DNA from: Rebecca billardiae RCC1528
Lineage: Eukaryota; Protista; Haptophyta
Length of the DNA stretch: 64,000 bases
Direction: 5' to 3'
Assembly: GCA_965240325.2 (NCBI GenBank)
Contig: OZ251222.1
Span: 4,650,001 to 4,714,000, forward strand
Part shown: positions 1-33,136 of the stretch, in pieces
How positions within the stretch are numbered: the first letter of the stretch is position 1
How the letters are laid out: each line of letters begins with the position of its first letter
The notes under the pieces: model-generated
Database searches by the model: none
The model's input: the letters and a program-made list of their open reading frames with translations, nothing else
What the model was told of the DNA's origin: nothing
Made by a program: the position numbers and the translations under genes

Positions 1-3000
1 GCTCGCCTCCGCCGCCACCGCCGTCGCCGCCGCCAAGCCCGCCTCCGTCTCCGCCACCGCCGAGCCCGCCGCCGCCACCCCCGCCATCGCCACCGCCGAG
101 TCCGCCACCACCGAGCCCTCCTCCGCCGCCTCCGCCGTCGCCGCCGCCGAGCCCTCCACCAAGCCCGCCGCCGCCGAGCCCACCGCCTCCCCCGCCGCCA
201 TCGCCACCTCCGTCGCCCCCGCCGCCCAGCTCGCCACCGCCGCCACCGCCGTCGCCGCCACCGAGCCCGCCTCCGTCTCCGCCGCCGCCGAGCCCGCCGC
301 CGCCACCGCCGCCGTCGCCACCGCCGTCGCCGCCACCGCCCAGCTCGCCACCGCCGCCACCGCCGTCGCCGCCACCCAGCCCGCCTCCCAGTCCGCCACC
401 GCCGAGCCCACCGCCGCCTCCGCCGCCATCGCCACCACCGTCGCCACCGCCGCCCAGCTCGCCACCGCCGCCACCGCCGTCGCCGCCGCCGAGCCCTCCA
501 CCAAGCCCACCACCGCCGAGCCCGCCGCCGCCACCGCCGCCATCGCCACCGCCGTCGCCCCCACCGCCCAGCTCGCCACCGCCGCCACCGCCGTCGCCGC
601 CACCCAGCCCGCCTCCCAGTCCGCCACCGCCGAGCCCACCGCCGCCTCCGCCGCCATCGCCACCACCGTCGCCACCGCCGCCCAGCTCGCCACCGCCGCC
701 ACCGCCGTCGCCGCCGCCGAGCCCTCCACCAAGCCCACCACCGCCGAGCCCGCCGCCGCCACCGCCGCCATCGCCACCGCCGTCGCCCCCACCGCCCAGC
801 TCGCCACCGCCGCCTCCGCCGTCGCCGCCACCCAGCCCGCCTCCCAGTCCGCCACCGCCGAGCCCACCGCCGCCTCCGCCGCCATCGCCACCACCGTCGC
901 CACCGCCGCCCAGCTCGCCACCGCCGCCACCGCCGTCGCCGCCGCCGAGCCCTCCACCAAGCCCACCACCGCCGAGCCCGCCGCCGCCACCGCCGCCATC
1001 GCCACCGCCGTCGCCCCCACCGCCCAGCTCGCCACCGCCGCCTCCGCCGTCGCCGCCACCCAGCCCGCCTCCCAGTCCGCCACCGCCGAGCCCACCGCCG
1101 CCTCCGCCGCCATCGCCACCACCGTCGCCACCGCCGCCCAGCTCGCCACCGCCGCCACCGCCATCGCCGCCGCCGAGCCCTCCACCAAGCCCACCACCGC
1201 CGAGCCCGCCGCCGCCACCGCCGCCATCGCCACCGCCGTCGCCCCCACCGCCCAGCTCGCCACCGCCGCCACCGCCGTCGCCGCCGCCGAGCCCGCCTCC
1301 GTCTCCGCCACCGCCGAGCCCGCCGCCGCCACCGCCGCCGTCGCCACCGCCGTCGCCCCCACCGCCCAGCTCGCCTCCGCCGCCACCGCCGTCGCCGCCG
1401 CCGAGCCCGCCTCCGTCTCCGCCACCGCCGAGCCCGCCGCCGCCACCGCCGCCGTCGCCACCGCCATCTCCACCGCCGAGTCCGCCACCACCGAGCCCTC
1501 CTCCGCCGCCTCCGCCGTCGCCGCCGCCGAGCCCTCCACCAAGCCCGCCGCCGCCGAGCCCACCGCCTCCCCCGCCGCCATCGCCACCACCGTCGCCACC
1601 GCCGCCCAGCTCGCCACCGCCGCCACCGCCGTCGCCGCCGCCGAGCCCACCACCGAGCCCGCCACCCCCGGGCCCGCCGCCGCCTCCGCCGCCATCTCCG
1701 CCGCCGTCGCCACCACCGCCCAGCTCGCCGCCGCCGCCACCGCCGTCGCCGCCGCCGAGCCCGCCACCCAGCCCGCCACCGCCGAGCCCGCCGCCGCCTC
1801 CGCCGCCATCGCCGCCGCCGTCGCCACCACCACCCAGCTCGCCTCCGCCGCCACCGCCGTCGCCGCCGCCGAGCCCGCCTCCGTCTCCGCCACCGCCGAG
1901 CCCGCCGCCGCCACCGCCGCCGTCGCCACCGCCGTCGCCCCCACCGCCCAGCTCGCCTCCGCCGCCACCGCCGTCGCCGCCGCCGAGCCCGCCTCCGTCT
2001 CCGCCACCGCCGAGCCCGCCGCCGCCACCGCCGCCGTCGCCACCGCCATCTCCACCGCCGAGTCCGCCACCACCGAGCCCTCCTCCACCGCCTCCGCCGT
2101 CACCGCCGCCGAGCCCTCCACCAAGCCCACCGCCGCCGAGCCCACCGCCTCCCCCGCCGCCATCGCCACCACCGTCGCCACCGCCGCCCAGCTCGCCGCC
2201 GCCGCCACCGCCATCGCCGCCGCCGAGCCCGCCGCCGTCTCCGCCGCCGCCGAGCCCGCCGCCGCCACCGCCGCCGTCGCCACCGCCGTCGCCGCCACCG
2301 CCCAGCTCGCCACCGCCGCCACCGCCGTCGCCGCCGCCGAGCCCTCCACCAAGCCCACCACCGCCGAGCCCGCCGCCGCCACCGCCGCCATCGCCACCGC
2401 CGTCGCCCCCACCGCCCAGCTCGCCACCGCCGCCTCCGCCGTCGCCGCCACCCAGCCCGCCTCCCAGTCCGCCACCGCCGAGCCCACCGCCGCCTCCGCC
2501 GCCATCGCCACCACCGTCGCCACCGCCGCCCAGCTCGCCACCGCCGCCACCGCCGTCGCCGCCGCCGAGCCCTCCACCAAGCCCACCACCGCCGAGCCCG
2601 CCGCCGCCACCGCCGCCATCGCCACCGCCGTCGCCCCCACCGCCCAGCTCGCCACCGCCGCCTCCGCCGTCGCCGCCACCCAGCCCGCCTCCCAGTCCGC
2701 CACCGCCGAGCCCACCGCCGCCTCCGCCGCCATCGCCACCACCGTCGCCACCGCCGCCCAGCTCGCCACCGCCGCCACCGCCGTCGCCGCCACCGAGCCC
2801 GCCTCCGTCTCCGCCGCCGCCGAGCCCGCCGCCGCCACCGCCGCCGTCGCCACCGCCGTCGCCGCCACCGCCCAGCTCGCCACCGCCGCCACCGCCGTCG
2901 CCGCCACCCAGCCCGCCTCCCAGTCCGCCACCGCCGAGCCCACCGCCGCCTCCGCCGCCATCGCCACCACCGTCGCCACCGCCGCCCAGCTCGCCACCGC

Positions 3001-6000
3001 CGCCACCGCCGTCGCCGCCGCCGAGCCCTCCACCAAGCCCACCACCGCCGAGCCCGCCGCCGCCACCGCCGCCATCGCCACCGCCGTCGCCCCCACCGCC
3101 CAGCTCGCCACCGCCGCCACCGCCGTCGCCGCCACCCAGCCCGCCTCCCAGTCCGCCACCGCCGAGCCCACCGCCGCCTCCGCCGCCATCGCCACCACCG
3201 TCGCCACCGCCGCCCAGCTCGCCACCGCCGCCACCGCCGTCGCCGCCGCCGAGCCCTCCACCAAGCCCACCACCGCCGAGCCCGCCGCCGCCACCGCCGC
3301 CATCGCCACCGCCGTCGCCCCCACCGCCCAGCTCGCCACCGCCGCCTCCGCCGTCGCCGCCACCCAGCCCGCCTCCCAGTCCGCCACCGCCGAGCCCACC
3401 GCCGCCTCCGCCGCCATCGCCACCACCGTCGCCACCGCCGCCCAGCTCGCCACCGCCGCCACCGCCGTCGCCGCCGCCGAGCCCTCCACCAAGCCCACCA
3501 CCGCCGAGCCCGCCGCCGCCACCGCCGCCATCGCCACCGCCGTCGCCCCCACCGCCCAGCTCGCCACCGCCGCCTCCGCCGTCGCCGCCACCCAGCCCGC
3601 CTCCCAGTCCGCCACCGCCGAGCCCACCGCCGCCTCCGCCGCCATCGCCACCACCGTCGCCACCGCCGCCCAGCTCGCCACCGCCGCCACCGCCATCGCC
3701 GCCGCCGAGCCCTCCACCAAGCCCACCACCGCCGAGCCCGCCGCCGCCACCGCCGCCATCGCCACCACCGTCGCCCCCACCGCCCAGCTCGCCACCGCCG
3801 CCACCGCCGTCGCCGCCGCCGAGCCCGCCTCCGTCTCCGCCACCGCCGAGCCCGCCGCCGCCACCGCCGCCGTCGCCACCGCCGTCGCCCCCACCGCCCA
3901 GCTCGCCTCCGCCGCCACCGCCGTCGCCGCCGCCGAGCCCGCCTCCGTCTCCGCCACCGCCGAGCCCGCCGCCGCCACCGCCGCCGTCGCCACCGCCATC
4001 TCCACCGCCGAGTCCGCCACCACCGAGCCCTCCTCCGCCGCCTCCGCCGTCGCCGCCGCCGAGCCCTCCACCAAGCCCGCCGCCGCCGAGCCCACCGCCT
4101 CCCCCGCCGCCATCGCCACCACCGTCGCCACCGCCGCCCAGCTCGCCACCGCCGCCACCGCCGTCGCCGCCGCCGAGCCCACCACCGAGCCCGCCACCCC
4201 CGGGCCCGCCGCCGCCTCCGCCGCCATCTCCGCCGCCGTCGCCACCACCGCCCAGCTCGCCGCCGCCGCCACCGCCGTCGCCGCCGCCGAGCCCGCCACC
4301 CAGCCCGCCACCGCCGAGCCCGCCGCCGCCTCCGCCGCCATCGCCGCCGCCGTCGCCACCACCACCCAGCTCGCCACCGCCGCCACCGCCGTCGCCGCCG
4401 CCGAGCCCGCCTCCGTCTCCGCCACCGCCGAGCCCGCCGCCGCCACCGCCGCCGTCGCCACCGCCGTCGCCCCCACCGCCCAGCTCGCCTCCGCCGCCAC
4501 CGCCGTCGCCGCCGCCGAGCCCGCCTCCGTCTCCGCCACCGCCGAGCCCGCCGCCGCCACCGCCGCCGTCGCCACCGCCATCTCCACCGCCGAGTCCGCC
4601 ACCACCGAGCCCTCCTCCACCGCCTCCGCCGTCACCGCCGCCGAGCCCTCCACCAAGCCCACCGCCGCCGAGCCCACCGCCTCCCCCGCCGCCATCGCCA
4701 CCACCGTCGCCACCGCCGCCCAGCTCGCCGCCGCCGCCACCGCCATCGCCGCCGCCGAGCCCGCCGCCGTCTCCGCCGCCGCCGAGCCCGCCGCCGCCAC
4801 CGCCGCCGTCGCCACCGCCGTCGCCGCCACCGCCCAGCTCGCCACCGCCGCCACCGCCGTCGCCGCCGCCGAGCCCTCCACCAAGCCCACCACCGCCGAG
4901 CCCGCCGCCGCCACCGCCGCCATCGCCACCGCCGTCGCCCCCACCGCCCAGCTCGCCACCGCCGCCTCCGCCGTCGCCGCCACCCAGCCCGCCTCCCAGT
5001 CCGCCACCGCCGAGCCCACCGCCGCCTCCGCCGCCATCGCCACCACCGTCGCCACCGCCGCCCAGCTCGCCACCGCCGCCACCGCCGTCGCCGCCGCCGA
5101 GCCCTCCACCAAGCCCACCACCGCCGAGCCCGCCGCCGCCACCGCCGCCATCGCCACCGCCGTCGCCCCCACCGCCCAGCTCGCCACCGCCGCCTCCGCC
5201 GTCGCCGCCACCCAGCCCGCCTCCCAGTCCGCCACCGCCGAGCCCACCGCCGCCTCCGCCGCCATCGCCACCACCGTCGCCACCGCCGCCCAGCTCGCCA
5301 CCGCCGCCACCGCCGTCGCCGCCGCCGAGCCCTCCACCAAGCCCACCACCGCCGAGCCCGCCGCCGCCACCGCCGCCGTCGCCACCGCCGTCGCCGCCAC
5401 CGCCCAGCTCGCCACCGCCGCCACCGCCGTCGCCGCCGCCGAGCCCGCCTCCGTCTCCGCCGCCGCCGAGCCCACCGCCGCCTCCGCCGCCATCGCCACC
5501 ACCGTCGCCACCGCCGCCCAGCTCGCCACCGCCGCCACCGCCGTCGCCGCCGCCGAGCCCTCCACCAAGCCCACCACCGCCGAGCCCGCCGCCGCCACCG
5601 CCGCCATCGCCACCGCCGTCGCCCCCACCGCCCAGCTCGCCACCGCCGCCACCGCCGTCGCCGCCACCCAGCCCGCCTCCCAGTCCGCCACCGCCGAGCC
5701 CACCGCCGCCTCCGCCGCCATCGCCACCACCGTCGCCACCGCCGCCCAGCTCGCCACCGCCGCCACCGCCGTCGCCGCCGCCGAGCCCTCCACCAAGCCC
5801 ACCACCGCCGAGCCCGCCGCCGCCACCGCCGCCGTCGCCACCGCCATCTCCACCGCCGAGTCCGCCACCACCGAGCCCTCCTCCACCGCCACCGCCGTCA
5901 CCGCCGCCGAGCCCTCCACCAAGCCCACCGCCGCCGAGCCCACCGCCGCCCCCGCCGCCATCGCCACCACCGTCGCCACCGCCGCCCAGCTCGCCGCCGC

Positions 6001-9000
6001 CGCCACCGCCGTCGCCGCCGCCGAGCCCGCCTCCGTCTCCGCCACCGCCGAGCCCGCCGCCGCCACCGCCGCCGTCGCCGCCGCCGTCGCCACCACCGCC
6101 CAGCTCGCCACCGCCGCCACCGCCATCGCCGCCGCCGAGCCCGCCACCCAGCCCGCCGCCGCCGAGCCCGCCGCCGCCACCGCCGCCATCGCCACCACCG
6201 TCGCCCCCACCGCCCAGCTCGCCTCCGCCGCCACCGCCGTCGCCGCCGCCGAGCCCGCCTCCGTCTCCGCCGCCGCCGAGCCCGCCGCCGCCACCGCCGC
6301 CATCCCCACCGCCATCGCCACCGCCGCCCAGCTCGCCACCGCCACCACCGCCGTCGCCGCCGCCGAGCCCGCCACCGAGCCCGCCACCGCCGAGCCCGCC
6401 GCCGCCTCCGCCGCCATCGCCACCGCCATCTCCACCGCCGCCCAGCTCGCCACCGCCGCCACCGCCGTCGCCGCCGCCGAGCCCGCCACCGAGCCCGCCA
6501 CCGCCGAGCCCGCCGCCGCCGCCGCCGCCATCGCCACCGCCGTCGCCCCCACCGCCCAGCTCGCCACCGCCGCCACCGCCGTCGCCGCCGCCGAGCCCGC
6601 CTCCGTCTCCGCCACCGCCGAGCCCGCCGCCGCCACCGCCGCCGTCGCCACCGCCATCTCCACCGCCGAGTCCGCCACCACCGAGCCCTCCTCCACCGCC
6701 ACCGCCGTCACCGCCGCCGAGCCCTCCACCAAGCCCACCGCCGCCGAGCCCACCGCCGCCCCCGCCGCCATCGCCACCACCGTCGCCACCGCCGCCCAGC
6801 TCGCCGCCGCCGCCACCGCCGTCGCCGCCGCCGAGCCCGCCACCGAGCCCGCCACCGCCGGGCCCGCCGCCGCCACCGCCGCCGTCGCCGCCGCCGTCGC
6901 CACCACCGCCCAGCTCGCCACCGCCGCCACCGCCATCGCCGCCGCCGAGCCCGCCACCCAGCCCGCCGCCGCCGAGCCCGCCGCCGCCACCGCCGCCATC
7001 GCCACCACCGTCGCCCCCACCGCCCAGCTCGCCTCCGCCGCCACCGCCGTCGCCGCCGCCGAGCCCGCCTCCGTCTCCGCCGCCGCCGAGCCCGCCGCCG
7101 CCACCGCCGCCATCCCCACCGCCATCGCCACCGCCGCCCAGCTCGCCACCGCCACCACCGCCGTCGCCGCCGCCGAGCCCGCCACCGAGCCCGCCACCGC
7201 CGAGCCCGCCGCCGCCTCCGCCGCCATCCCCACCGCCATCTCCACCGCCGCCCAGCTCGCCACCGCCGCCACCGCCGTCGCCGCCGCCGAGCCCGCCACC
7301 GAGCCCGCCACCGCCGAGCCCGCCGCCGCCGCCGCCGCCATCGCCACCGCCGTCGCCCCCACCGCCCAGCTCGCCACCGCCGCCACCGCCGTCGCCGCCG
7401 CCGAGCCCGCCTCCGTCTCCGCCACCGCCGAGCCCGCCGCCGCCACCGCCGCCGTCGCCACCGCCATCTCCACCGCCGAGTCCGCCACCACCGAGCCCTC
7501 CTCCACCGCCACCGCCGTCACCGCCGCCGAGCCCTCCACCAAGCCCACCGCCGCCGAGCCCACCGCCGCCCCCGCCGCCATCGCCACCACCGTCGCCACC
7601 GCCGCCCAGCTCGCCGCCGCCGCCACCGCCGTCGCCGCCGCCGAGCCCGCCACCGAGCCCGCCACCGCCGGGCCCGCCGCCGCCACCGCCGCCGTCGCCG
7701 CCGCCGTCGCCACCACCGCCCAGCTCGCCACCGCCGCCACCGCCATCGCCGCCGCCGAGCCCGCCACCCAGCCCGCCGCCGCCGAGCCCGCCGCCGCCAC
7801 CGCCGCCATCGCCACCACCGTCGCCCCCACCGCCCAGCTCGCCTCCGCCGCCACCGCCGTCGCCGCCGCCGAGCCCGCCTCCGTCTCCGCCGCCGCCGAG
7901 CCCGCCGCCGCCACCGCCGCCATCCCCACCGCCATCGCCACCGCCGCCCAGCTCGCCACCGCCACCACCGCCGTCGCCGCCGCCGAGCCCGCCACCGAGC
8001 CCGCCACCGCCGAGCCCGCCGCCGCCTCCGCCGCCATCCCCACCGCCATCTCCACCGCCGCCCAGCTCGCCACCGCCGCCACCGCCGTCGCCGCCGCCGA
8101 GCCCGCCACCGAGCCCGCCACCGCCGAGCCCGCCGCCGCCGCCGCCGCCATCGCCACCGCCGTCGCCCCCACCGCCCAGCTCGCCACCGCCGCCACCGCC
8201 GTCGCCGCCGCCGAGCCCGCCTCCGTCTCCGCCACCGCCGAGCCCGCCGCCGCCACCGCCGCCGTCGCCACCGCCATCTCCACCGCCGAGTCCGCCACCA
8301 CCGAGCCCTCCTCCACCGCCACCGCCGTCACCGCCGCCGAGCCCTCCACCAAGCCCACCGCCGCCGAGCCCACCGCCGCCCCCGCCGCCATCGCCACCAC
8401 CGTCGCCACCGCCGCCCAGCTCGCCGCCGCCGCCACCGCCGTCGCCGCCGCCGAGCCCGCCACCGAGCCCGCCACCGCCGGGCCCGCCGCCGCCACCGCC
8501 GCCGTCGCCGCCGCCGTCGCCACCACCGCCCAGCTCGCCACCGCCGCCACCGCCATCGCCGCCGCCGAGCCCGCCACCCAGCCCGCCGCCGCCGAGCCCG
8601 CCGCCGCCACCGCCGCCATCGCCACCACCGTCGCCCCCACCGCCCAGCTCGCCTCCGCCGCCACCGCCGTCGCCGCCGCCGAGCCCGCCTCCGTCTCCGC
8701 CGCCGCCGAGCCCGCCGCCGCCACCGCCGCCATCCCCACCGCCATCGCCACCGCCGCCCAGCTCGCCACCGCCGCCACCGCCGTCGCCGCCGCCGAGTCC
8801 TCCACCAAGCCCACCACCGCCGAGCCCGCCGCCGCCTCCGCCGCCATCGCCACCGCCGTCGCCCCCACCGCCCAGCTCGCCACCGCCGCCACCGCCGTCG
8901 CCGCCGCCAAGCCCGCCTCCGTCTCCGCCACCGCCGAGCCCGCCGCCGCCTCCGCCACCGTCGCCACCGCCGTCGCCCCCACCGCCCAGCTCGCCACCGC

Positions 9001-12000: not shown

Positions 12001-13209
12001 GCTCGCCACCGCCGCCACCGCCGTCGCCGCCACCCAGCCCGCCACCCAGTCCGCCACCACCGAGCCCGCCGCCGCCGCCGCCGCCATCGCCACCACCGTC
12101 GCCCCCACCGCCCAGCTCGCCACCGCCGCCACCGCCGTCACCGCCGCCGAGCCCGCCTCCGTCTCCGCCACCGCCGAGCCCGCCGCCGCCACCGCCGCCG
12201 TCGCCACCACCGTCGCCCCCACCGCCCAGCTCGCCTCCGCCGCCACCGCCGTCGCCGCCGCCGAGCCCGCCTCCGTCTCCGCCACCGCCGAGCCCGCCGC
12301 CGCCACCGCCGCCGTCGCCACCACCGTCGCCCCCACCGCCCAGCTCGCCTCCGCCGCCACCGCCGTCGCCGCCGCCGAGCCCGCCTCCGTCTCCGCCACC
12401 GCCGAGCCCGCCGCCGCCACCGCCGCCGTCGCCCCCACCGTCGCCCCCACCGCCCAGCTCGCCTCCGCCGCCACCGCCGTCGCCGCCGCCAAGTCCGCCT
12501 CCGTCTCCGCCACCGCCGAGCCCGCCGCCGCCACCGCCGCCATCGCCACCGCCATCTCCACCGCCGAGTCCGCCACCACCGAGCCCTCCTCCGCCGCCTC
12601 CGCCGTCGCCGCCGCCGAGCCCTCCACCAAGCCCGCCGCCGCCGAGCCCACCGCCTCCCCCGCCGCCATCGCCACCACCGTCGCCCCCACCGCCCAGCTC
12701 GCCTCCGCCGCCACCGCCGTCACCGCCGCCGAGCCCGCCTCCGTCTCCGCCACCGCCGAGCCCGCCGCCGCCACCGCCGCCGTCGCCACCACCGTCGCCC
12801 CCACCGCCCAGCTCGCCTCCGCCGCCACCGCCGTCGCCGCCGCCGAGCCCGCCTCCGTCTCCGCCACCGCCGAGCCCGCCGCCGCCACCGCCGCCGTCGC
12901 CACCACCGTCGCCCCCACCGCCCAGCTCGCCTCCGCCGCCACCGCCGTCGCCGCCGCCGAGCCCGCCTCCGTCTCCGCCACCGCCGAGCCCGCCGCCGCC
13001 ACCGCCGCCGTCGCCACCACCGTCGCCCCCACCGCCCAGCTCGCCACCGCCACCACCGCCGTCGCCGCCGCCAAGTCCGCCTCCGTCTCCGCCACCGCCG
13101 AGCCCGCCGCCGCCACCGCCGCCATCGCCACCGCCATCTCCACCGCCGAGTCCGCCACCACCGAGCCCTCCTCCGCCGCCTCCGCCGTCGCCGCCGCCGA
13201 GCCCTCCAC

Positions 13210-13240
<31 letters not shown>

Positions 13241-16200
13241 ACCGCCGCCATCGCCCCCACCGTCGCCCCCACCGCCCAGCTCGCCTCCGCCGCCACCGCC
13301 GTCACCGCCGCCGAGCCCGCCTCCGTCTCCGCCACCGCCGAGCCCGCCGCCGCCACCGCCGCCGTCGCCACCACCGTCGCCCCCACCGCCCAGCTCGCCA
13401 CCGCCGCCACCGCCGTCGCCGCCGCCAAGTCCGCCTCCGTCTCCGCCACCGCCGAGCCCGCCGCCGCCACCGCCGCCGTCGCCACCACCGTCGCCCCCAC
13501 CGCCCAGCTCGCCTCCGCCGCCACCGCCGTCGCCGCCGCCGAGCCCGCCTCCGTCTCCGCCACCGCCGAGCCCGCCGCCGCCACCGCCGCCGTCGCCACC
13601 ACCGTCTCCCCCACCGCCCAGCTCGCCTCCGCCGCCACCGCCGTCGCCGCCGCCGAGCCCGCCTCCGTCTCCGCCACCGCCGAGCCCGCCGCCGCCACCG
13701 CCGCCGTCGCCACCACCGTCGCCCCCACCGCCCAGCTCGCCACCGCCGCCACCGCCGTCGCCGCCGCCAAGTCCGCCTCCGTCTCCGCCACCGCCGAGCC
13801 CTCCGCCGCCACCGCCGCCATCGCCACCGCCATCTCCACCGCCGAGTCCGCCACCACCGAGCCCTCCTCCGCCGCCACCGCCGTCGCCGCCGCCGAGCCC
13901 TCCACCAAGCCCGCCGCCGCCGAGCCCACCGCCTCCCCCGCCGCCATCGCCACCACCGTCGCCCCCACCGCCCAGCTCGCCTCCGCCGCCACCGCCGTCG
14001 CCGCCGCCGAGCCCACCACCGAGCCCGCCACCCCCGGGCCCGCCGCCGCCTCCGCCGCCATCGCCGCCGCCGTCGCCACCACCGCCCAGCTCGCCACCGC
14101 CGCCACCGCCGTCGCCGCCACCCAGCCCGCCACCCAGTCCGCCACCGCCGAGCCCGCCGCCGCCGCCGCCGCCATCGCCACCACCGTCGCCCCCACCGCC
14201 CAGCTCGCCACCGCCGCCACCGCCGTCGCCGCCGCCGAGCCCGCCTCCGTCTCCGCCACCGCCGAGCCCGCCGCCGCCACCGCCGCCGTCGCCACCACCG
14301 TCGCCCCCACCGCCCAGCTCGCCACCGCCGCCACCGCCGTCGCCGCCGCCAAGCCCGCCTCCGTCTCCGCCACCGCCGAGCCCGCCGCCGCCACCGCCGC
14401 CATCGCCACCGCCATCTCCACCGCCGAGTCCGCCACCACCGAGCCCTCCTCCGCCGCCTCCGCCGTCGCCGCCGCCGAGCCCTCCACCAAGCCCGCCACC
14501 GCCGAGCCCACCGCCTCCCCCGCCGCCATCGCCACCACCGTCGCCCCCACCGCCCAGCTCGCCTCCGCCGCCACCGCCGTCGCCGCCGCCGAGCCCACCA
14601 CCCAGTCCGCCACCCCCGGGCCCGCCGCCGCCACCGCCGCCATCGCCGCCGCCGTCGCCACCACCACCCAGCTCGCCACCGCCGCCACCGCCGTCGCCGC
14701 CACCCAGCCCGCCACCCAGTCCGCCACCGCCGAGCCCGCCGCCGCCGCCGCCGCCATCGCCACCACCGTCGCCCCCACCGCCCAGCTCGCCACCGCCGCC
14801 ACCGCCGTCGCCGCCGCCGAGCCCACCACCGAGCCCGCCACCCCCGGGCCCGCCGCCGCCACCGCCGCCATCGCCGCCGCCGTCGCCACCACCACCCAGC
14901 TCGCCACCGCCGCCACCGCCGTCGCCGCCACCCAGCCCGCCACCCAGTCCGCCACCGCCGAGCCCGCCGCCGCCGCCGCCGCCATCGCCACCACCGTCGC
15001 CCCCACCGCCCAGCTCGCCACCGCCGCCACCGCCGTCGCCGCCGCCGAGCCCGCCTCCGTCTCCGCCACCACCGAGCCCGCCACCCCCGGGCCCGCCGCC
15101 GCCTCCGCCGCCATCGCCGCCGCCGTCGCCACCACCGCCCAGCTCGCCGCCGCCGCCACCGCCGTCGCCGCCGCCAAGCCCGCCACCCAGTCCGCCACCG
15201 CCGAGCCCGCCGCCGCCACCTCCGCCGTCGCCACCACCGTCGCCCCCACCGCCCAGCTCGCCACCGCCGCCACCGCCGTCGCCGCCACCCAGCCCGCCAC
15301 CCAGTCCGCCACCGCCGAGCCCGCCGCCGCCGCCGCCGCCATCGCCACCACCGTCGCCCCCACCGCCCAGCTCGCCACCGCCGCCACCGCCGTCGCCGCC
15401 GCCGAGCCCGCCTCCGTCTCCGCCACCGCCGAGCCCGCCGCCGCCACCGCCGCCGTCGCCACCACCGTCGCCCCCACCGCCGAGCTCGCCTCCGCCGCCA
15501 CCGCCGTCTCCGCCGCCGAGCCCGCCTCCGTCTCCGCCACCGCCGAGCCCGCCGCCGCCACCGCCGCCGTCGCCACCACCGTCGCCCCCACCGCCCAGCT
15601 CGCCTCCGCCTCCACCGCCGTCGCCGCCGCCAAGCCCGCCTCCGTCTCCGCCACCGCCGAGCCCGCCGCCGCCACCGCCGCCGTCGCCACCACCGTCGCC
15701 CCCACCGCCCAGCTCGCCGCCGCCGCCACCGCCGTCGCCGCCGCCAAGCCCGCCACCCAGTCCGCCACCGCCGAGCCCGCCGCCGCCACCTCCGCCGTCG
15801 CCACCACCGTCGCCCCCCCCGCCCAGCTCGCCACCGCCGCCACCGCCGTCGCCGCCGCCGAGCCCGCCTCCGTCTCCGCCACCGCCGAGCCCGCCGCCGC
15901 CACCGCCGCCGTCGCCACCACCGTCGCCCCCACCGCCCAGCTCGCCTCCGCCGCCACCGCCGTCTCCGCCGCCGAGCCCGCCTCCGTCTCCGCCACCGCC
16001 GAGCCCGCCGCCGCCACCGCCGCCGTCGCCCCCACCGTCGCCCCCACCGCCCAGCTCGCCTCCGCCGCCACCGCCGTCGCCGCCGCCAAGCCCGCCTCCG
16101 TCTCCGCCACCGCCGAGCCCGCCGCCGCCACCGCCGCCGTCGCCACCGCCATCTCCACCACCGAGTCCGCCACCACCGAGCCCTCCTCCGCCGCCTCCGC

Positions 16201-19200
16201 CGTCGCCGCCGCCGAGCCCTCCACCAAGCCCGCCGCCGCCGAGCCCACCGCCTCCCCCGCCGCCATCGCCACCACCGTCGCCACCGCCGCCCAGCTCGCC
16301 ACCGCCGCCACCGCCGTCGCCGCCGCCGAGCCCACCACCGAGCCCGCCACCCCCGGGCCCGCCGCCGCCACCGCCGCCATCGCCGCCGCCGTCGCCACCA
16401 CCGCCCAGCTCGCCGCCGCCGCCACCGCCGTCGCCGCCGCCAAGCCCGCCACCCAGTCCGCCACCGCCGAGCCCGCCGCCGCCACCTCCGCCGTCGCCAC
16501 CACCGTCGCCCCCACCGCCCAGCTCGCCACCGCCGCCACCGCCGTCGCCGCCACCCAGCCCGCCACCCAGTCCGCCACCGCCGAGCCCGCCGCCTCCCCC
16601 GCCGCCATCGCCACCACCGTCGCCCCCACCGCCCAGCTCGCCACCGCCGCCACCGCCGTCGCCGCCGCCGAGCCCGCCTCCGTCTCCGCCACCGCCGAGC
16701 CCGCCCGCCGCCACCGCCGCCGTCGCCACCACCGTCGCCCCCACCGCCCAGCTCGCCTCCGCCGCCACCGCCGTCTCCGCCGCCGAGCCCGCCTCCGTCT
16801 CCGCCACCGCCGAGCCCGCCGCCGCCACCGCCGCCGTCGCCCCCACCGTCGCCCCCACCGCCCAGCTCGCCTCCGCCGCCACCGCCGTCGCCGCCGCCAA
16901 GCCCGCCTCCGTCTCCGCCACCGCCGAGCCCGCCGCCGCCACCGCCGCCGTCGCCACCACCGTCGCCCCACCGCCCAGCTCGCCTCCGCCGCCACCGCCG
17001 TCGCCGCCGCCAAGCCCGCCTCCGTCTCCGCCACCGCCGAGCCCGCCGCCGCCACCGCCGCGTCGCCACCGCCATCTCCACCGCCGAGTCCGCCACCACC
17101 GAGCCCTCCTCCGCCGCCTCCGCCGTCGCCGCCGCCGAGCCCTCCACCAAGCCCGCCGCCCCCGGGCCCGCCGCCGCCACCGCCGCCATCGCCGCCGCCG
17201 TCGCCACCACCGCCCAGCTCGCCCGCCGCCGCCACCGCCGTCGCCGCCGCCAAGCCCGCCACCCAGTCCGCCACCGCCGAGCCCGCCGCCGCCACCTCCG
17301 CCGTCGCCACCACCGTCGCCCCCACCGCCCAGCTCGCCACCGCCGCCACCGCCGTCGCCGCCACCCAGCCCGCCACCCAGTCCGCCACCGCCGAGCCCGC
17401 CGCCGCCGCCGCCGCCATCGCCACCACCGTCGCCCCCACCGCCCAGCTCGCCACCGCCGCCACCGCCGTCGCCGCCGCCGAGCCCGCCTCCGTCTCCGCC
17501 ACCGCCGAGCCCGCCGCCGCCACCGCCGCCGTCGCCACCGCCATCTCCACCGCCGAGTCCGCCACCACCGAGCCCTCCTCCGCCGCCTCCGCCGTCGCCG
17601 CCACCCAGCCCGCCACCCAGTCCGCCACCGCCGAGCCCGCCGCCGTCGCCGCCGCCATCGCCACCACCGTCGCCACCGCCGCCCAGCTCGCCACCGCCGC
17701 CACCGCCGTCGCCGCCACCCAGCCCGCCACCCAGTCCGCCACCGCCGAGCCCGCCGCCGCCTCCGCCGCCATCGCCACCGCCGTCGCCACCACCGCCCAG
17801 CTCGCCGCCGCCGCCACCGCCGTCGCCGCCGCCGAGCCCACCACCCAGTCCGCCACCCCCGGGCCCGCCGCCGCCTCCGCCGCCATCGCCGCCGCCGTCG
17901 CCCCCACCGCCAAGCTCGCCACCGCCGCCACCGCCGTCGCCGCCGCCGAGCCCGCCTCCGTCTCCGCCACCGCCGAGCCCGCCGCCGCCACCGCCGCCGT
18001 CGCCACCACCGTCGCCCCCACCGCCCAGCTTGCCTCCGCCGCCACCGCCGTCGCCTCCGCCAAGCCCGCCTCCGTCTCCGCCACCGCCGAGCCCGCCGCC
18101 GCCACCGCCGCCATCGCCACCGCCATCTCCACCGCCGAGTCCGCCACCACCGAGCCCTCCTCCGCCGCCTCCGCCGTCGCCGCCGCCGAGCCCTCCACCA
18201 AGCCCGCCGCCGCCGAGCCCACCGCCTCCCCCGCCGCCATCGCCACCTCCGTCGCCACCGCCGCCCAGCTCGCCACCGCCGCCACCGCCGTCGCCGCCAC
18301 CCAGCCCGCCACCAAGCCCGCCACCGCCGAGCCCGCCGCCGCCGCCGCCGCCATCGCCACCACCGTCGCCACCGCCGCCCAGCTCGCCACCGCCGCCACC
18401 GCCGTCGCCGCCACCCAGCCCGCCACCCAGTCCGCCACCCCCGGGCCCGCCGCCGCCTCCGCCGCCATCGCCGCCGCCGTCGCCACCACCACCCAGCTCG
18501 CCACCGCCGCCACCGCCGTCGCCGCCACCCAGCCCGCCACCCAGTCCGCCACCGCCGAGCCCGCCGCCGCCGCCACCGCCATCGCCACCACCGTCGCCCC
18601 CACCGCCCAGCTCGCCACCGCCGCCACCGCCGTCGCCGCCGCCGAGCCCGCCTCCGTCTCCGCCACCGCCGAGCCCGCCGCCGCCACCGCCGCCGTCGCC
18701 CCCACCGTCGCCACCACCGCCCAGCTCGCCTCCGCCGCCACCGCCGTCGCCGCCGCCAAGCCCGCCTCCGTCTCCGCCACCGCCGAGCCCGCCGCCGCCG
18801 CCGCCGCCGTCGCCCCCACCGTCGCCCCCACCGCCTAGCTCGCCTCCGCCGCCACCGCCGTCGCCGCCGCCAAGCCCGCCTCCGTCTCCGCCACCGCCGA
18901 GCCCGCCGCCGCCACCGCCGCCGTCGCCCCCACCGTCGCCACCACCGCCCAGCTCGCCTCCGCCGCCACCGCCGTCGCCGCCGCCAAGCCCGCCTCCGTC
19001 TCCGCCACCGCCGAGCCCGCCGCCTCCACCGCCGCCGTCGCGACCACCGTCGCCCCCACCGCCCAGCTTGCCTCCGCCGCCACCGCCGTCGCCTCCGCCA
19101 AGCCCGCCTCCGTCTCCGCCACCGCCGAGCCCGCCGCCGCCACCGCCGCCATCGCCACCGCCATCTCCACCGCCGAGTCCGCCACCACCGAGCCCTCCTC

Positions 19201-25200: not shown

Positions 25201-28200
25201 CACCGCCGCCGTCGCCTCCGCCGTCACCGCCACCCTCGCCACCACCGCCGAGCCCGCCGCCACCACCGCCGCCGTCGCCACCACCCAGACCACCGCCATC
25301 GCCGCCACCACCGAGCCCGCCGCCACCACCGCCACCGTCGCCGCCGCCGACCCCGCCTCCGTCGCCACCACCGCCGAGCCCGCCGCCACCACCGCCACCG
25401 TCGCCGCCGCCGACCCCGCCTCCGTCGCCACCACCGCCGAGCCCGCCGCCACCACCGCCACCGTCGCCGCCGCCGACCCCGCCTCCGTCGCCACCACCGC
25501 CGAGCCCGCCGCCACCACCGCCACCGTCGCCGCCGCCGACCCCGCCTCCCTCGCCACCACCGCCGAGCCCGCCGCCGCCACCGCCGCCGTCGCCACCGCC
25601 GAACCCGCCTCCGTCTCCACCACCGCCAAGTCCGCCGCCGCCACCGCCGCCGTCGCCACCACCCAGACCACCGCCATCGCCGCCACCACCGAGCCCGCCG
25701 CCACCACCGCCACCGTCGCCACCGCCATCTCCACCGCCATCGCCGCCACCACCGAGCCCGCCGCCACCACCGCCGCCGTCGCCACCACCCAGACCACCGC
25801 CATCGCCGCCACCACCGAGCCCGCCGCCACCACCGCCGCCGTCGCCACCACCCAGACCACCGCCATCGCCGCCACCACCGAGCCCGCCGCCACCACCGCC
25901 ACCGTCGCCGCCGCCGACCCCGCCTCCGTCGCCACCACCGCCGAGCCCGCCGCCACCACCGCCACCGTCGCCGCCGCCGACCCCGCCTCCGTCGCCACCA
26001 CCGCCGAGCCCGCCGCCACCACCGCCACCGTCGCCACCACCCAGACCACCGCCATCGCCGCCACCACCGAGCCCGCCGCCACCACCGCCACCGTCGCCGC
26101 CGCCGACCCCGCCTCCGTCGCCACCACCGCCGAGCCCGCCGCCACCACCGCCACCGTCGCCGCCGCCGACCCCGCCTCCGTCGCCACCACCGCCGAGCCC
26201 GCCGCCACCACCGCCACCGTCGCCGCCGCCGACCCCGCCTCCGTCGCCACCACCGCCGAGCCCGCCGCCACCACCGCCACCGTCGCCACCGCCATCTCCA
26301 CCGCCATCGCCGCCACCACCGAGCCCGCCGCCACCACCGCCGCCGTCGCCACCACCCAGACCACCGCCATCGCCGCCACCACCGAGCCCGCCGCCACCAC
26401 CGCCGCCGTCGCCACCACCCAGACCACCGCCATCGCCGCCACCACCGAGCCCGCCGCCACCACCGCCACCGTCGCCGCCGCCGACCCCGCCTCCGTCGCC
26501 ACCACCGCCGAGCCCGCCGCCGCCACCGCCGCCGTCGCCACCACCCAGACCACCGCCATCGCCGCCACCACCGAGCCCGCCGCCACCACCGCCGCCATCG
26601 CCGCCGCCGACCCCGCCTCCGTCGCCACCACCGCCGAGCCCGCCGCCACCACCGCCGCCGTCGCCACCACCCAGACCACCGCCATCGCCGCCACCACCGA
26701 GCCCGCCGCCACCACCGCCGCCATCGCCGCCGCCGACCCCGCCTCCGTCGCCACCACCGCCGAGCCCGCCGCCGCCACCGCCGCCGTCGCCACCACCCAG
26801 ACCACCGCCATCGCCGCCACCACCGAGCCCGCCGCCACCACCGCCGCCATCGCCGCCGCCGACCCCGCCTCCGTCGCCACCACCGCCGAGCCCGCCGCCA
26901 CCACCGCCGCCGTCGCCACCACCCAGACCACCGCCATCGCCGCCACCACCGAGCCCGCCGCCACCACCGCCGCCATCGCCGCCGCCGACCCCGCCTCCGT
27001 CGCCACCACCGCCGAGCCCGCCGCCACCACCGCCACCGTCGCCGCCGCCGACCCCGCCTCCGTCGCCACCACCGCCGAGCCCGCCGCCGCCACCGCCGCC
27101 GTCGCCACCACCCAGACCACCGCCATCGCCGCCACCACCGAGCCCGCCGCCACCACCGCCGCCATCGCCGCCGCCGACCCCGCCTCCGTCGCCACCACCG
27201 CCGAGCCCGCCGCCACCACCGCCGCCGTCGCCACCACCCAGACCACCGCCATCGCCGCCACCACCGAGCCCGCCGCCACCACCGCCGCCATCGCCGCCGC
27301 CGACCCCGCCTCCGTCGCCACCACCACCGAGCCCGCCGCCACCACCGCCACCGTCGCCGCCGCCGACCCCGCCTCCGTCTCCACCACCACCGAGCCCGCC
27401 GCCACCACCGCCGCCGTCGCCACCACCCAGACCACCGCCATCGCCGCCACCACCGAGCCCGCCGCCACCACCGCCACCGTCGCCGCCGCCGACCCCGCCT
27501 CCGTCTCCACCACCGCCGAGCCCGCCGCCACCACCGCCGCCATCGCCGCCGCCGACCCCGCCTCCGTCGCCACCACCGCCGAGCCCGCCGCCACCACCGC
27601 CGCCGTCGCCACCACCCAGACCACCGCCATCGCCGCCACCACCGAGCCCGCCGCCACCACCGCCGCCATCGCCGCCGCCGACCCCGCCTCCGTCGCCACC
27701 ACCACCGAGCCCGCCGCCACCACCGCCACCGTCGCCGCCGCCGACCCCGCCTCCGTCTCCACCACCACCGAGCCCGCCGCCACCACCGCCGCCGTCGCCA
27801 CCACCCAGACCACCGCCATCGCCGCCACCACCGAGCCCGCCGCCACCACCGCCACCGTCGCCGCCGCCGACCCCGCCTCCGTCTCCACCACCGCCGAGCC
27901 CGCCGCCACCACCGCCGCCGTCGCCGCCGCCGACCCCGCCTCCGTCGCCACCACCGCCGAGCCCGCCGCCACCACCGCCACCGTCGCCGCCGCCGACCCC
28001 GCCTCCGTCGCCACCACCGCCGAGCCCGCCGCCACCACCGCCACCGTCGCCGCCGCCGACCCCGCCTCCCTCGCCACCACCGCCGAGCCCGCCGCCACCA
28101 CCGCCGCCGTCGCCACCACCCAGACCACCGCCATCGCCGCCACCACCGAGCCCGCCGCCACCACCGCCGCCGTCGCCTCCTCCCTATCCGCCACCGTCGC

Positions 28201-28280
28201 CGCCACCACCGAGCCCGCCGCCGCCCCCGCCGCCGTCGCCTCCGCCGTCGCCGCCGCCGAGCCCACCGCCCTCACCGCCG
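1..28280 (+). repeat. Coding minisatellite: 114-bp (38 aa) and 63-bp (21 aa) Ser-Pro units in higher-order repeats
   Basis: Units SSP6SP3SP3SP4SP7SP3SP4 and SP3SP3SP4SP7. Diagnostic variants recur at 810 bp (5861, 6671, 7481, 8291), 1050 bp (19041/20091), 2532 bp (1670/4202) and 2910 bp (21731/24641). From ~25270 only 63-bp units with Thr/Arg substitutions occur. Confidence 0.97.
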
Positions 28281-31200
28281 CAGCCAATCAGTGGCGGTGG
28301 CGGCGGCGGCCCTGGCGGACCGGCTCCTCCGCCGTCGCCACCGCCCTCGCCTCCGCCCTCGCCTCCACCGAGCGGCGGTGGTGGCGGTGGCGGTGCAGGT
28401 CCTACGCCGCCACCGTCACCACCGCCCTCGCCGCCGCCAGCCGGCGGTGGCGATGGGGGTGGTGCTGGTGGCCCCACGCCGCCACCATCACCGCCACCAT
28501 CGCCTCCGCCGAGCGGTGGCGGCGGCGGCGGCGGGGGCGGTGGTGGCCCCACGCCGCCGCCCTCGCCGCCACCATCGCCACCACCAGCTGGCGGCGGCGG
28601 AGGCCGCGGCGGCGGACCCACGCCGCCGCCCTCGCCGCCGCCCTCGCCGCCGCCTCCGGGCGACTGGATCAGCCAGGCGGTCGAGGAGCTGCTCGGCCTG
28701 GGCGTGCTGCCGGACCCAGAGCCCGCGGCGACCACTTCGTCCGCGACTCCTGCGCCCACGGGCGGCGGCGGCGGCGGCGGCGCGGACGAGACGTTTGGCG
28801 AGGCGAGCTACCGCGCCGACCGTGTCAACGAGGCGGTGGACGACTTCCTCGTGCGCCAGATCAGCAGCACGGGGCCGGGCGTGACGAGCGTCTCGAGCGT
28901 GGAGACGCAGTACGGCACGGCGGGCATCGTGCTGCGGGGCGTCGACACCTCGACGTTCGGGCTGAGCGACATTGTCGTCGACTCGCCCGCCGTGCCGGTG
29001 TCGGACGGCGACACGGCCGCCGCCACGTTCACCATCCCCGTGTCCACGCTCGAGTTCATGCTGGGCCGCGGGCTGCTCAACGTGACCAACGCGTCCGAGA
29101 TCCGCTCGCTGCACGTGGCCGTCGTGCTGTGGGAGAACAACTACCGCGCGTTCGCCGGGCTCGACGGGTTCGTCCTCGCGGACACGCTCACGAGCGTGAC
29201 CGTGTGGCTCAACGGCGCGCCGCTCGACGTGGACTTCACGCAGCTCACGCAGCCGGGCGAGGCGCCGCCCGTGGTGACGATCTCGCTGCCGGTCGACCCG
29301 TCCGTGCTGCCGGCCGAGAGCGCGGGCTTCAGCTGCCGCTTCTGGGGCGGCGACGCGTGGGAGAACAAGGGGTGCGTGGACGTGGGCGACCCGCTCGACT
29401 CGGTGGTCGAGTGCGAGTGCACGCACCTCACCGACTTCATCGCCGTGTACGAGGCGAGCGCCGCGCTGACCGAGGACCCCGGCCTGGCGTCGACCGACCC
29501 GCCGCTCAACGTGAATGCGATCTCGCTCGACCGCGTGAGCTTCTCGTACACGGCGCTGGTGATCCTCTTCTTCCTGCTGCTGGTCTACGCCTCGCTCTAC
29601 TACTGCGCGCACAGGCGGGACCGGCACATCGAGCGCGAGCCATTCGTGCCGCTGTGGAAGCGCAAGGAGGACGAGCACCTGTGCTACGCGCTCGGCGCCG
29701 CGCTGATCTCGCGCTCGACCGTCTCGTGGTGGCTCGCGCGGCTGCCGGGCGAGCTGGACACGTCGCGGCAGCGCGTGACGGTGCTGTACAACACGCTGCT
29801 CGCCGAGCTGCTGATGATCCTCGTCTTCATCGGGCAGGACAACTCGCTCGCGCACCAGGTGCTCACGCTCGCCGCGGTCTCGATCGCGGCGGGCGTGCCC
29901 TTCGAGTTCGCCATCCACTTCCTCTTCCGCTGGGCGAACCGGCGCCGCCCGCTGCACCGGCTCAAGGCGAAGCTCATCAAGAAGTACGGCCGAGAGCTCA
30001 GGCAGCGGACGCTGTGGCGCCGCTTCTGGCGCCCGTTCTGCGGCGGCTGCGCGCGCGTGCTCCCCTTCCGCATCGGCCTCGCGCCGCGTGAGGAGGAGTT
30101 CACCTCGGCCGTGCCGACCAAGCCGCCCGAGGTGGACGACCCGAGTCTCATGTCGCCGCGCCGCACGTCGGCGCCGATCCGGCCCATGGCACTGACCTTG
30201 CCGGCCTCGCCGCCGCCCAGCCCGCCGCCGCCGTCACGCCCGCGCCCTGCTGACTCGGGCTTGGCACTGTCCTTGCCCGCCTCGCCGCCGCCCGGCCCGC
30301 CGCAGCCGTCGCGGCCGCGGCTTGGGTCGGTCGTGGCGCGCATGCGCGCGCAGGCGGACGCGGAGGCGGCCGCGGAGGCTGCCGGAGAGCCGAGGTCTCC
30401 TCCGCCCGCCCGCCGCCATCGGGCTTCAGCTGCCCGACGCGTGCTCCGCGCTGCGCGCGCCTCGGAGTCGAGCGATGACGAGGCGGCTGAGCAGGCGTCC
30501 AGGCTAGCGGCGCTCGAGCGGCGTGCGTCGCAGCTGGGCATTCTGCAAGACTGGCACGACCTGATCGCCGACGACTCGGACTCTGACTCGGACACGGACA
30601 CGAGCTCCCGCGCGCGGACGCACGACCTGAGCTCGCTGAGCGACACCGCGTCCCACGTCGGCGCCAGGCGCGCCTCGCCCTCGCTGGCGAGCCCCGCCCA
30701 GAAGGCGGGCGCGCACGGCGCGGACAGCAGCAGCGTGCCGCTGCCGCTGCTCTCCGCCGCGCACAAGCTGCTGTACGTCTGCCCGTCCAAGGTGGGCATC
30801 GCGCCGCGCCACGGCGAGCAGGTGGAGAACGCGGGCGCGCGCGACTCGATCCGGATGCCCGCCAAGGCGCTGATGGCGGTGCACACGCGCCGCGGCGAGA
30901 TGGTGGGCTTCTTCGTGCACGTGGGCGTGGCGGACGCGACCGAGCTCGCGCGCAAGCGCTTCAACGAGCGCCGCGTCGCGACGCAGCGGCGGCTCGCCAG
31001 CCCGCTCAAGCGCATGATGGACGCCATCGTGCCGAGCCATCGGCACGAGGAGGACGCCGGCGCGCACGCCGACGTGGAGGGCGATGTGCAGCACACCGAG
31101 TACCGGCCGGAGCACGTGCCCGACCTGCGCTTCGTGCAGGCGCACCTCGTGTACAAGGCGGCCGACGCGCCCGCCGACCAGGTGGCCACGCGCTACTACC

Positions 31201-31901
31201 ACGTCAAGCCGACCGCGGCCGAGCGGCTCGCGAAGAAGCGCAGCGCGATGGTGCACGTCGTGCCCTTCGGCTCGCCCTTTGTCGACGGCCGGCCCGTGCA
31301 CTCGGCTGACCTCTTCTGCGAGCCCGACGTGGCGCGCGCGCACCTGCTGGCCGCGTACGCAAAGGTGCCGGGGCGGGCGGCCGCGCCTTCGCCGTCCGCG
31401 GCGGTGGAGCCCGACGCGGCCGGCAGGCGGCGGGGCTCGACCGGCGCGGCGGCCCGGGCCGCGGAGGCGGCGAAGCCGCACTCGCCCCGCCGCCGCCGGC
31501 TCGCCGCGTCCGAGCAGCTCTCGGACGTGGAGGCGTACTCGCGCATCGACGAGAAGTCGCTCAAGATCGCGCAGCTGTGGTGGTCGCTGCCGCGCCGGTG
31601 GAAGGTGCTGCTCGCGTGGAGCGTGCACGCTGTGCTCGGGCTGGCCATGTACTTCGCGATCATCCTGTACTCGCTCACCAACCCGATCCTGCAGGACCTC
31701 GGCATGTGGACGGGCCCGGTCGTGTCGACGGTCGTGCACGCGCAGCTCATCAAGCTGTTCGTGATGGAGCCGGCCGTGGCGTTCGCGTCGCCGCTCGCCA
31801 AGTTTGCGCTGGCGTGCCTGCCGGAGGAGGTGCAGGACATGATCGTGGAGTACATCCTCTCGCCCATCGGGCGGCTCTTCGCGCTGTGCACGATCCATTG
31901 A
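3..31901 (+). CDS. Giant extensin-like (Ser-Pro) stalk + GAIN/GPS + polycystin-1-like 5-TM membrane protein, 5'-partial (>=10,632 aa)
   Basis: The frame starting at base 3 (TCG CCT CCG) is the same as ORF 18030..31901 and has no stop; the 18030 start is only an internal TTG. GPS motif CRFW..W.NKGC...CECTHL|TDF at 29334-29438. TM1 ~29541-29610. TM2 follows TSRQRVTVLY, resembling the PKD1-family TRxQR motif. TM3 ~29847-29933. TM4/TM5 ~31605-31820. Four single-C indels at 16704-17223 cancel out. Confidence 0.85.
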
Positions 31902-32341
31902 GTGGCCCTGCGCTGGACTCTGACCCGCGGAGCCGCGGAGCCGTCAAGAGCCGTCGCTACCGCTGTACCGCCGATCGATCGACGACGACTTATCTGAGAC
32001 GGTTACAGAAGCCTACTCTACAGCAGATCGAGCCTCTGATTAGCGCCGGTGTGATGGCTGGGGTAGCTCGAGACAACTGGATATCTGGATCGACACTGCC
32101 GATGATCTCCGGATGAAGCAAGCATGCAGTCATGCACGTTCTCGACCAGGGCGAGCGGTATGGTGCTCACGCTGGCGCCGCCATTCGGCTCCCCCGCGGC
32201 GGCCCGGCCGGGGCCCTGGGCGCCCCTGGCGGGATGAAATTCCAAATTCGTCGGATTATTTTCCCCGCGATCTCGGCCGAAAACGCGTGCGGACCAGCAG
32301 GGCACGAGGGTCGGCCTGGCCCGGTCGTATCCGTAGCCACG

Positions 32342-33136
32342 ATGGCAGGCGTGCAGACGATGGCGCTCCTCGCGTTCGGGCTGGTGTCGGCCGCTGGCAT
32401 GGTAGCCGACTCGCGGCTGGCCTCGCCGCGTGTCAGCCCACTCCGACGCGTTGCACTCGCGAGGCAGCCGACCGGGATGCAGCGCATGTGCGCTTCGCCT
32501 GCCGCTCCTGAGCCGCAGGTTGGTGACGAGGCCGCGACGCGCAAAGAGCTGAAGGGGGAGCTGCGCGAGGTCGTCGCCCCGCTGCGGGTGGGCTTCGACG
32601 CGACGCCGGAGCAGCAGTCCGAGGTGCTCGAGATTGTGGAGGAGCTAGAGACGTTCAACCCGACCCCGGAGCCCCTGAAGTCGCCGGGAATCGCCGGCAA
32701 GTGGAATCTCATTTACACGTCGTCGCCAAGCGTGCGCGGCGTGCAGGGTGTGATGGGCGTGAACCAGTGGTTCCGCGACGCGAGTATGACGGGCTTCGTG
32801 CAGGACGTCCGTATCGAGCCCAACTACATGAAGTACGTGGAGACTGTCGAGTTTCCCGGGCTCGTCGCATCGATGGTCGGCAATGTCGCGGTCGCCGAGG
32901 GCTTCTGGACCATCATGGAGGATGAGCCCAACACGATGGTCACCGACGCCAACAAGGTCACGGTCGGCCCGATGAAGTACGATTCGGATCAGTGGCAGTC
33001 GCTCCGCTGCCTCATGATCCAGGACGTCACCTACCTTGACGAGGACCTGCGCATCCAGCATGGGCTCGTGCCAAACATCATCTTCGTGTTCGAGCGCATG
33101 CCGGAAGATACAGTGCTTGCGGATGGGTCAACGTGA
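32342..33136 (+). CDS. Plastid lipid-associated protein / fibrillin family (264 aa)
   Basis: Hydrophobic signal peptide plus Arg/Ser-rich transit-like region. Fibrillin-type ATPEQQSEVLEIVEELETFNPTPEP..GKWNLIYTS and C-terminal VTYLDEDLRI...IFVFER. Intronless. Confidence 0.85.
   Translation: MAGVQTMALLAFGLVSAAGMVADSRLASPRVSPLRRVALARQPTGMQRMCASPAAPEPQVGDEAATRKELKGELREVVAPLRVGFDATPEQQSEVLEIVEELETFNPTPEPLKSPGIAGKWNLIYTSSPSVRGVQGVMGVNQWFRDASMTGFVQDVRIEPNYMKYVETVEFPGLVASMVGNVAVAEGFWTIMEDEPNTMVTDANKVTVGPMKYDSDQWQSLRCLMIQDVTYLDEDLRIQHGLVPNIIFVFERMPEDTVLADGST

Follow-up and report, generated by a model that had tools for sequence, protein, structure and literature searches.

A giant Ser-Pro rod in frame with a GAIN domain and a polycystin-1-like membrane base in the haptophyte Rebecca billardiae: a candidate cleavable hair and tension sensor

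What is a reading frame of more than ten thousand codons, made up largely of proline and serine, doing in front of a set of membrane helices? This question is raised by a stretch of 64,000 nucleotides (nt) from the haptophyte Rebecca billardiae RCC1528 (GenBank assembly GCA_965240325.2, contig OZ251222.1, positions 4,650,001 to 4,714,000 of the forward strand), which is called the window here and in which positions are counted from the first letter. The third plus-strand frame contains no stop between 3 and 31898 (10,632 codons); the start of the window cuts this frame and a TGA at 31899-31901 closes it. The first 28 kb of the window have a G+C content of 83-85% with a marked excess of C. Our data indicate that the frame is the 3' part, 31.9 kb long, of a gene encoding a rod, a hinge, a GAIN domain and a polycystin-1-like base, and that the product could be acting as a cleavable hair and as a sensor of tension or adhesion. 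For this reading as a whole we estimate a probability of about 0.6. The architecture taken by itself is highly probable, and the tension-sensing function is put forward tentatively, at rather less than even odds. It should be noted here that the N-terminal head and the signal peptide of the protein lie beyond the window and that the residue count of the rod is a lower bound.

The first point to be settled is whether the Ser-Pro array is coding. In an array of 84% G+C the absence of stops proves little, because most of the frames are nearly open; a six-frame check found three stops or fewer across the array in four of the six frames. The variation between the repeat copies is a different kind of evidence. 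Copies were found to vary at 16-21% of third codon positions and at about 1% of first and second positions. In a six-frame control the Ser-Pro frame showed 3,560 synonymous against 84 non-synonymous differences (a ratio of 42), and the ratios of four other frames lay between 0.0 and 0.13. The mirrored Gly-rich frame of the minus strand gave 12.7, which is expected since GGN complements CCN. A Gly-rich gene on the minus strand (GGGL/GGGD, 2-28183) was considered and rejected as a complement artefact of the Pro codons; it has one stop inside, and the sites that are uniformly Ser on the forward strand become partly Leu and partly Asp/Glu in it. The codon-position pattern together with the frame control thus places the plus-strand Ser-Pro frame under protein-level selection. 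Rod and membrane base share one frame, and the rod is under purifying selection as Ser-Pro. An initial annotation of the window, made from the letters alone, had seen one stop-free frame with some 9,420 Ser/Pro residues, and this was borne out with a count of 9,426 in the frame 3-31898.

Residues 1-9,426 form the rod, which accounts for about 89% of the protein inside the window. Their composition is 79% Pro and 20% Ser. The annotation had called the stretch almost pure Ser/Pro; this holds for the composition, but the array is interrupted by two out-of-frame islands, which are taken up below. Pro runs occur as SP3 (770 times), SP4 (476), SP6 (185) and SP7 (291). Over 1-28281 Tandem Repeats Finder reports a unit of 114 nt (38 amino acids, aa) as well as periods of 228 and 468 nt, and the 38-aa unit is present in 127 canonical copies. 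By self-comparison the rod also contains higher-order blocks of 582, 810, 1,620, 2,316 and 2,532 nt, every one of them divisible by three, and some of these blocks are 99.4-99.8% identical per kilobase. From about 25275 on the unit is one of 63 nt (21 aa) of the SPPP[T/R]PPP type, in which one Ser site is Thr or Arg. The rod contains the Ser-Pro(3-5) repeats that serve as the criterion for extensins and hydroxyproline-rich glycoproteins (HRGPs). Repeats of the Ser-Pro(3-7) kind are the classic sites of hydroxyproline arabinosylation and Ser galactosylation, and it is in these repeats that the likeness to extensins and HRGPs lies. Unlike the extensins, the rod is essentially free of Tyr-based cross-linking motifs (a single Tyr in 9,426 residues), is membrane-anchored and has about ten times the typical extensin length. 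It also differs from plant and green-algal HRGPs in that its host does not belong to the green lineage and its modification is a predicted one.

What does this rod end on? Rod, hinge and GAIN domain are contiguous in a single frame, with neither a stop nor a frame change between them. The hinge looks like a flexible joint linking the rod to a globular base. The GAIN region was modelled by AlphaFold as a single helix plus a beta sandwich. The annotation had read an intact GPS motif in this region and had proposed a profile comparison of the C-terminal part; the Pfam GPS profile matches it above the cutoff (26 bits vs 22.5, E 1.4e-5). The motif contains four Cys, two Trp and the HL|T site, which was found at 29424-29432 where the annotation had put it, and is followed by the stalk TDFIAVYE. 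Foldseek identified the GAIN fold of CELSR1, BAI3, BAI2, CD97, GPR110 and latrophilin (E 3.5e-6 to 1e-3), and the same set was matched by VIA-align with Z of 12-14, so that the domain is confirmed by profile as well as by fold. The sequence of the stalk resembles the tethered agonists of adhesion G-protein-coupled receptors (GPCRs), which have the form T-x-F-hydrophobic. HLT is kept in both relatives whose GPS could be aligned. In L002, a relative from a Logan assembly, an intron of 186 nt with GT-AG borders (1121-1306) interrupts HL|T within the codon for Leu, and the gene caller therefore cut that gene in two.

The stalk leads into the membrane base, where the annotation had predicted five transmembrane (TM) segments resembling TM1-5 of PKD1. 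Five hydrophobic segments were indeed found and were modelled as helices. Two independent AlphaFold models of the base were used for the structure searches. The top match of VIA-align over 48,161 PDB representatives was polycystin-1 of the PC1/PC2 complex (8z6b_A, residues 3071-3610, TM1-TM5), with Z 17.3 over 181 residues, a root-mean-square deviation of 3.4 A and 18% identity, and all five helices were spanned. For the same region the other model, which was built independently, had a Z of 16.9 over 183 residues at 19% identity. The next unrelated match to the base had a Z of 6.8. A chance arrangement of helices in bundles may yield a Z near 13, and the polycystin-1 match exceeds this value. 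The models support a resemblance of the base to TM1-TM5 of polycystin-1 that is far better than to any other PDB entry. At the sequence level there is a weak link by hhalign (E 4e-5, probability 70%): TM1-TM3 align with the region that follows the GPS in a giant REJ-GPS protein, and the cluster of this protein also includes a sequence from Rhodomonas salina.

How much of a polycystin-1 is it? With polycystin-1 and the REJ-GPS proteins it shares the GAIN/GPS region with HL|T and stalk, and a topology of TM1, loop, TM2-TM3, long cytoplasmic loop and TM4-TM5. Unlike polycystin-1, it lacks PLAT in loop 1, the channel half (TM6-TM11/TOP) and the C-terminal coiled-coil tail, as well as REJ in the part inside the window, and its ectodomain is a low-complexity rod and not a series of Ig-like PKD, leucine-rich repeat or lectin domains. 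A Pfam scan of 28203-31898 found no PLAT (E<=1), no REJ, and no PKD_channel, Polycystin_dom or 7tm_2; rod and hinge abut the GAIN domain directly. A downstream continuation as channel half was considered and rejected, as the stop comes soon after TM5 and an unrelated PAP_fibrillin gene begins 230 nt further on. The stop, this next gene and the fact that the relatives end alike mean that the protein comprises only the front half of polycystin-1. The designation as a polycystin-1-like receptor can thus be kept for the GAIN/GPS region and the fold of TM1-TM5, and has to be given up for PLAT, for TM6-11 and, in the part inside the window, for REJ. With the adhesion GPCRs the protein has in common the GAIN fold, the conserved GPS and the stalk that resembles a tethered agonist. 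It differs from them in having five helices and no 7tm_2 bundle, and the best match to an adhesion GPCR 7TM region was ADGRF1 with a Z of 6.7.

When 1.84 billion representatives were searched exhaustively with HMMER, the last 1,060 residues serving as the query, just 27 proteins were returned, the best of them 35-40% identical. Judged by its sequence, the base is a member of a small unnamed family. Common to the family are the motifs REPxxPxWK, SWWLxRLPGE, LLYVCP, GEMVGFFV, PDLRFVQ, CEPDxA and LWWSxPxxW and an invariant E-P in TM5. Conservation extends over the whole base, the relatives stop at the same point after TM5, and the block from TM4-TM5 to the C-terminus (31596-31901), with invariant W, W and E-P, is the most conserved part. 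The relatives come from environmental assemblies, from Logan contigs and, for one member, from an MMETSP transcriptome. A search with the family profile had a single match, the Sec7 protein KFE25_002018 of Diacronema lutheri (P0030, E 2.7e-93). Some members carry a Sec7-PH module (an Arf guanine nucleotide exchange factor), which lies within the TM3-TM4 loop in P0015 and after TM5 in P0003, and is also present in P0030. Its occurrence in paralogues hints that the base may signal to membrane trafficking. In the relatives L002 and L003 the contig edge starts with Ser-Pro in the same open reading frame, directly upstream of the GAIN domain; thus the proline stretch is a family trait, and it is the site where short-read assemblies break. 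No relative was found in metagenome contigs with a single-protein query.

More distant matches covered the GAIN/GPS region only. They were REJ-GPS giants (from Cyanophora, and from a cluster in which a Rhodomonas salina sequence is also found) and an adhesion GPCR. These giants (P0024/P0029 and P0021) are 2,998-7,067 aa long. No PLAT or PKD_channel was found after the GPS in P0021 and P0024, the two that were scanned with Pfam. Channel-less polycystin-1-like proteins may be widespread in algae.

The features of the gene are collected in the table below together with its downstream neighbours, which are of the housekeeping type and unrelated to the rod gene.

Table. Positions in the window of the parts of the rod gene, of the two islands within the array and of the neighbouring genes.
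Feature	Position	Strand	Description
Ser-Pro array (SP3, SP4, SP6, SP7)	3-28280	plus	9,426 codons, open at window start
Island 1, out of frame	16704-16966	plus	87 residues, Ala/Thr-rich
Island 2, out of frame	17061-17222	plus	54 residues, Arg/His-rich
Hinge	28281-28658	plus	five Gly runs (7-11 Gly) alternating with (PPPS)3 blocks; Tandem Repeats Finder periods 69/72 nt
GAIN domain with GPS	28800-29459	plus	about 220 residues; Pfam GPS, Foldseek, VIA-align
TM1	29547-29636	plus	hydrophobic segment, modelled helix
TM1-TM2 loop	between TM1 and TM2	plus	about 42 residues, cytoplasmic; motifs REPxxPxWK, SWWLxRLPGE
TM2	29763-29828	plus	hydrophobic segment, modelled helix
TM3	29847-29936	plus	hydrophobic segment, modelled helix
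TM3-TM4 cytoplasmic region	29937-31595	plus	about 550 aa, mostly disordered
Cytoplasmic alpha/beta domain	30768-31361	plus	confidently modelled; motifs LLYVCP, GEMVGFFV, PDLRFVQ, CEPDVA
TM4	31596-31679	plus	hydrophobic segment, modelled helix
TM5	31698-31814	plus	hydrophobic segment; C-terminal helix after it, stop 31899-31901
PAP_fibrillin gene	32132-33136		starts 230 nt past the stop; unrelated
Short-chain dehydrogenase fragment	35148-35786
Multicopper oxidase	35935-38082
XRN 5'-3' exonuclease	47619-50336		with R3H domain
ArsP-type permease open reading frame	58128-60077	minus	with calreticulin-like stretch

Has such a design been seen before? The initial annotation did not recognise the architecture. 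It is correct that no paper describing this design was found, and a full-text literature search found no paper linking a GPS/GAIN domain with haptophytes. However, the same design principle was published in 2024 for MST3 (PMC11015965). MST3 (Mstax) is the poly-hydroxyproline mastigoneme core of Chlamydomonas reinhardtii, with 8,572 aa (Dai et al. 2024, PMC11015965; Wang et al. 2023, PMC10602792), and its anchor, a partial domain of PKD2-like type without S1, is completed by SIP (PMC11015965). Like MST3, the protein described here is a giant (8,572 vs >10,632 aa) single-chain proline-rich filament on a polycystin-type transmembrane module; both come from flagellate algae, and a glycosylated polyproline-II helix would be the predicted form of both rods. 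The two differ in the anchor, which in MST3 is PKD2-like with no GAIN/GPS reported and here is GAIN plus TM1-TM5 of polycystin-1 type with no channel-type domain. They differ also in the rod motif (SP3/SP4/SP6-7 against P13...P11(XXP)3 in MST3) and in the lineage, Haptophyta against Chlorophyta, and no sequence homology between them was detected. The design principle is that of MST3, and the differences are the anchor, the rod motif and the lineage. No PKD2-like or MST3-type protein was seen among those of the 27 matches that were examined closely.

How would such a protein work? Read from outside to inside, a head beyond the window would be followed by the Ser-Pro rod with its 9,426 or more residues. 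The Gly-rich hinge would link this rod to the GAIN domain, whose GPS would be competent for cleavage, and innermost would come the five-helix base, with a cytoplasmic domain specific to the family between TM3 and TM4. The rod would be prolyl-hydroxylated and O-glycosylated and would thereby become a stiff polyproline-II filament of up to about 2.9 micrometres. This value follows from 9,426 residues at 0.31 nm each, the rise seen in TLP-4, in which one extended peptide with 3.1 A per residue forms a free glycan-coated fibril (PMC11725842). A Pavlova cell measures roughly 5 micrometres (PMC8379373), and the predicted rod would span more than half of that. The GAIN domain would cut itself at HL|T and the filament would then be held non-covalently. 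Tension could strain or shed the filament, and the stalk TDFIAVYE would then become accessible to the five helices of the base; for polycystin-1 and for adhesion GPCRs such an exposure has been proposed (PMC9171645, PMC9672506). The base in turn may alter the state of the conserved cytoplasmic domain and perhaps act on Arf-type trafficking, as the Sec7-bearing paralogues suggest. The protein could thus be a cleavable surface or flagellar hair which doubles as a tension or adhesion sensor. A precedent for a poly-hydroxyproline filament on a polycystin-type anchor exists in MST3 (PMC11015965).

Several results weigh against this reading. The similarity of the base to PKD1 that the annotation had expected is a structural one: the family profile run against the PDB sequences found no PKD1 chain and only chance-level matches to dopamine receptors. 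Foldseek with the post-GPS fragment gave a best E of 2.5 in the PDB, weak GPS proteins only among the AFDB clusters and nothing useful in the ESM Atlas. The cytoplasmic domain between TM3 and TM4 matched no recognised fold with Foldseek and no Pfam family. In addition, two frameshift pairs lie inside the rod (16704-17222), and the blocks with 99.4-99.8% identity over 1 kb leave the copy number of the array uncertain. A PLAT-like or a PH-like fold for the cytoplasmic domain was considered and rejected, as there was no support for either.

The chief rival to tension sensing is a purely structural role, in which the rod would be the core or tether of a hair or scale layer on the flagellum or cell surface and the base merely a point of anchoring or release. 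Such a role is possible, though we consider it fairly unlikely. It would agree with the fact that MST3 is a structural core (PMC11015965), with the large share of the rod in the protein and with the lack of any signalling domain recognised by Pfam in the copy in the window. For a passive anchor, however, it would be unexpected that the cytoplasmic domain and TM4-TM5 are the best-conserved parts of the family and that paralogues insert Sec7-PH in the cytoplasmic region. An extension of the sensor reading is that the GAIN-bearing five-helix base docks in trans onto separately encoded channel subunits of the PKD2/TRPP type, so that the hair would gate a Ca2+ channel directly; this we regard as doubtful and put forward as a speculation.

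It is also conceivable, and in our estimate quite improbable, that the assembly gives the 28-kb array a wrong number of copies, or that the array is an expansion which has become a pseudogene and bears the frameshift islands as scars. The copy most similar to 16601-17320 lies at 12662-13381; an alignment of the two contains 22 mismatches over 718 nt, and four 1-nt indels (+1 at 16704, -1 at 16966, -1 at 17061 and +1 at 17222). All four indels are located in C/G runs; they and the near-identical kilobase blocks speak for artefact or decay. However, each pair of indels returns the array to its original frame. The pairs could be real compensated mutations, or the block could have been shifted by one base in the consensus polishing of a C-rich repeat. 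The longest exact repeat inside the array is 1,544 nt and none is as long as 2 kb; ordinary long reads can anchor an array of this kind and therefore could in principle resolve it. Decay is further opposed by the 42:1 ratio of synonymous to non-synonymous differences over the array, by higher-order periods that are all multiples of three, and by the C-terminal 1,060 aa, which are undamaged and align end to end with the relatives.

That rod and receptor are separate products, either because a start or splice downstream of the array yields a GAIN-base protein of about 1,100 aa alone or because the rod is a separate secreted HRGP, has very little probability: the gene models of some members (P0003, P0006) are without any ectodomain, but no stop or frame change interrupts rod, hinge and GAIN domain, the hinge combines rod-type PPPS blocks with Gly runs, and L002 and L003 have Ser-Pro in the same open reading frame as the GAIN domain.

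If the rod protein is made as encoded, it would be among the longest proteins known to us. A tethered, GAIN-anchored rod in a haptophyte would mean that extensin-type Ser-Pro rods extend beyond the green lineage, and that a distant protist has GAIN together with the TM1-TM5 half of polycystin-1 as a module in its own right. After MST3, this would be the second case, independent of the first, in which a giant proline filament is tethered by a membrane module of polycystin type. Such a case would bear on what the N-terminal membrane half of polycystin-1, a poorly understood part of that protein, does, and on the ways in which surface hairs are made and sensed in flagellates. Should docking in trans onto channel subunits be true as well, then, with MST3 carrying only the back half, animal polycystin-1 would be a fusion of two filament-anchoring modules, and mechanotransduction from filament to polycystin would be older than the animals.

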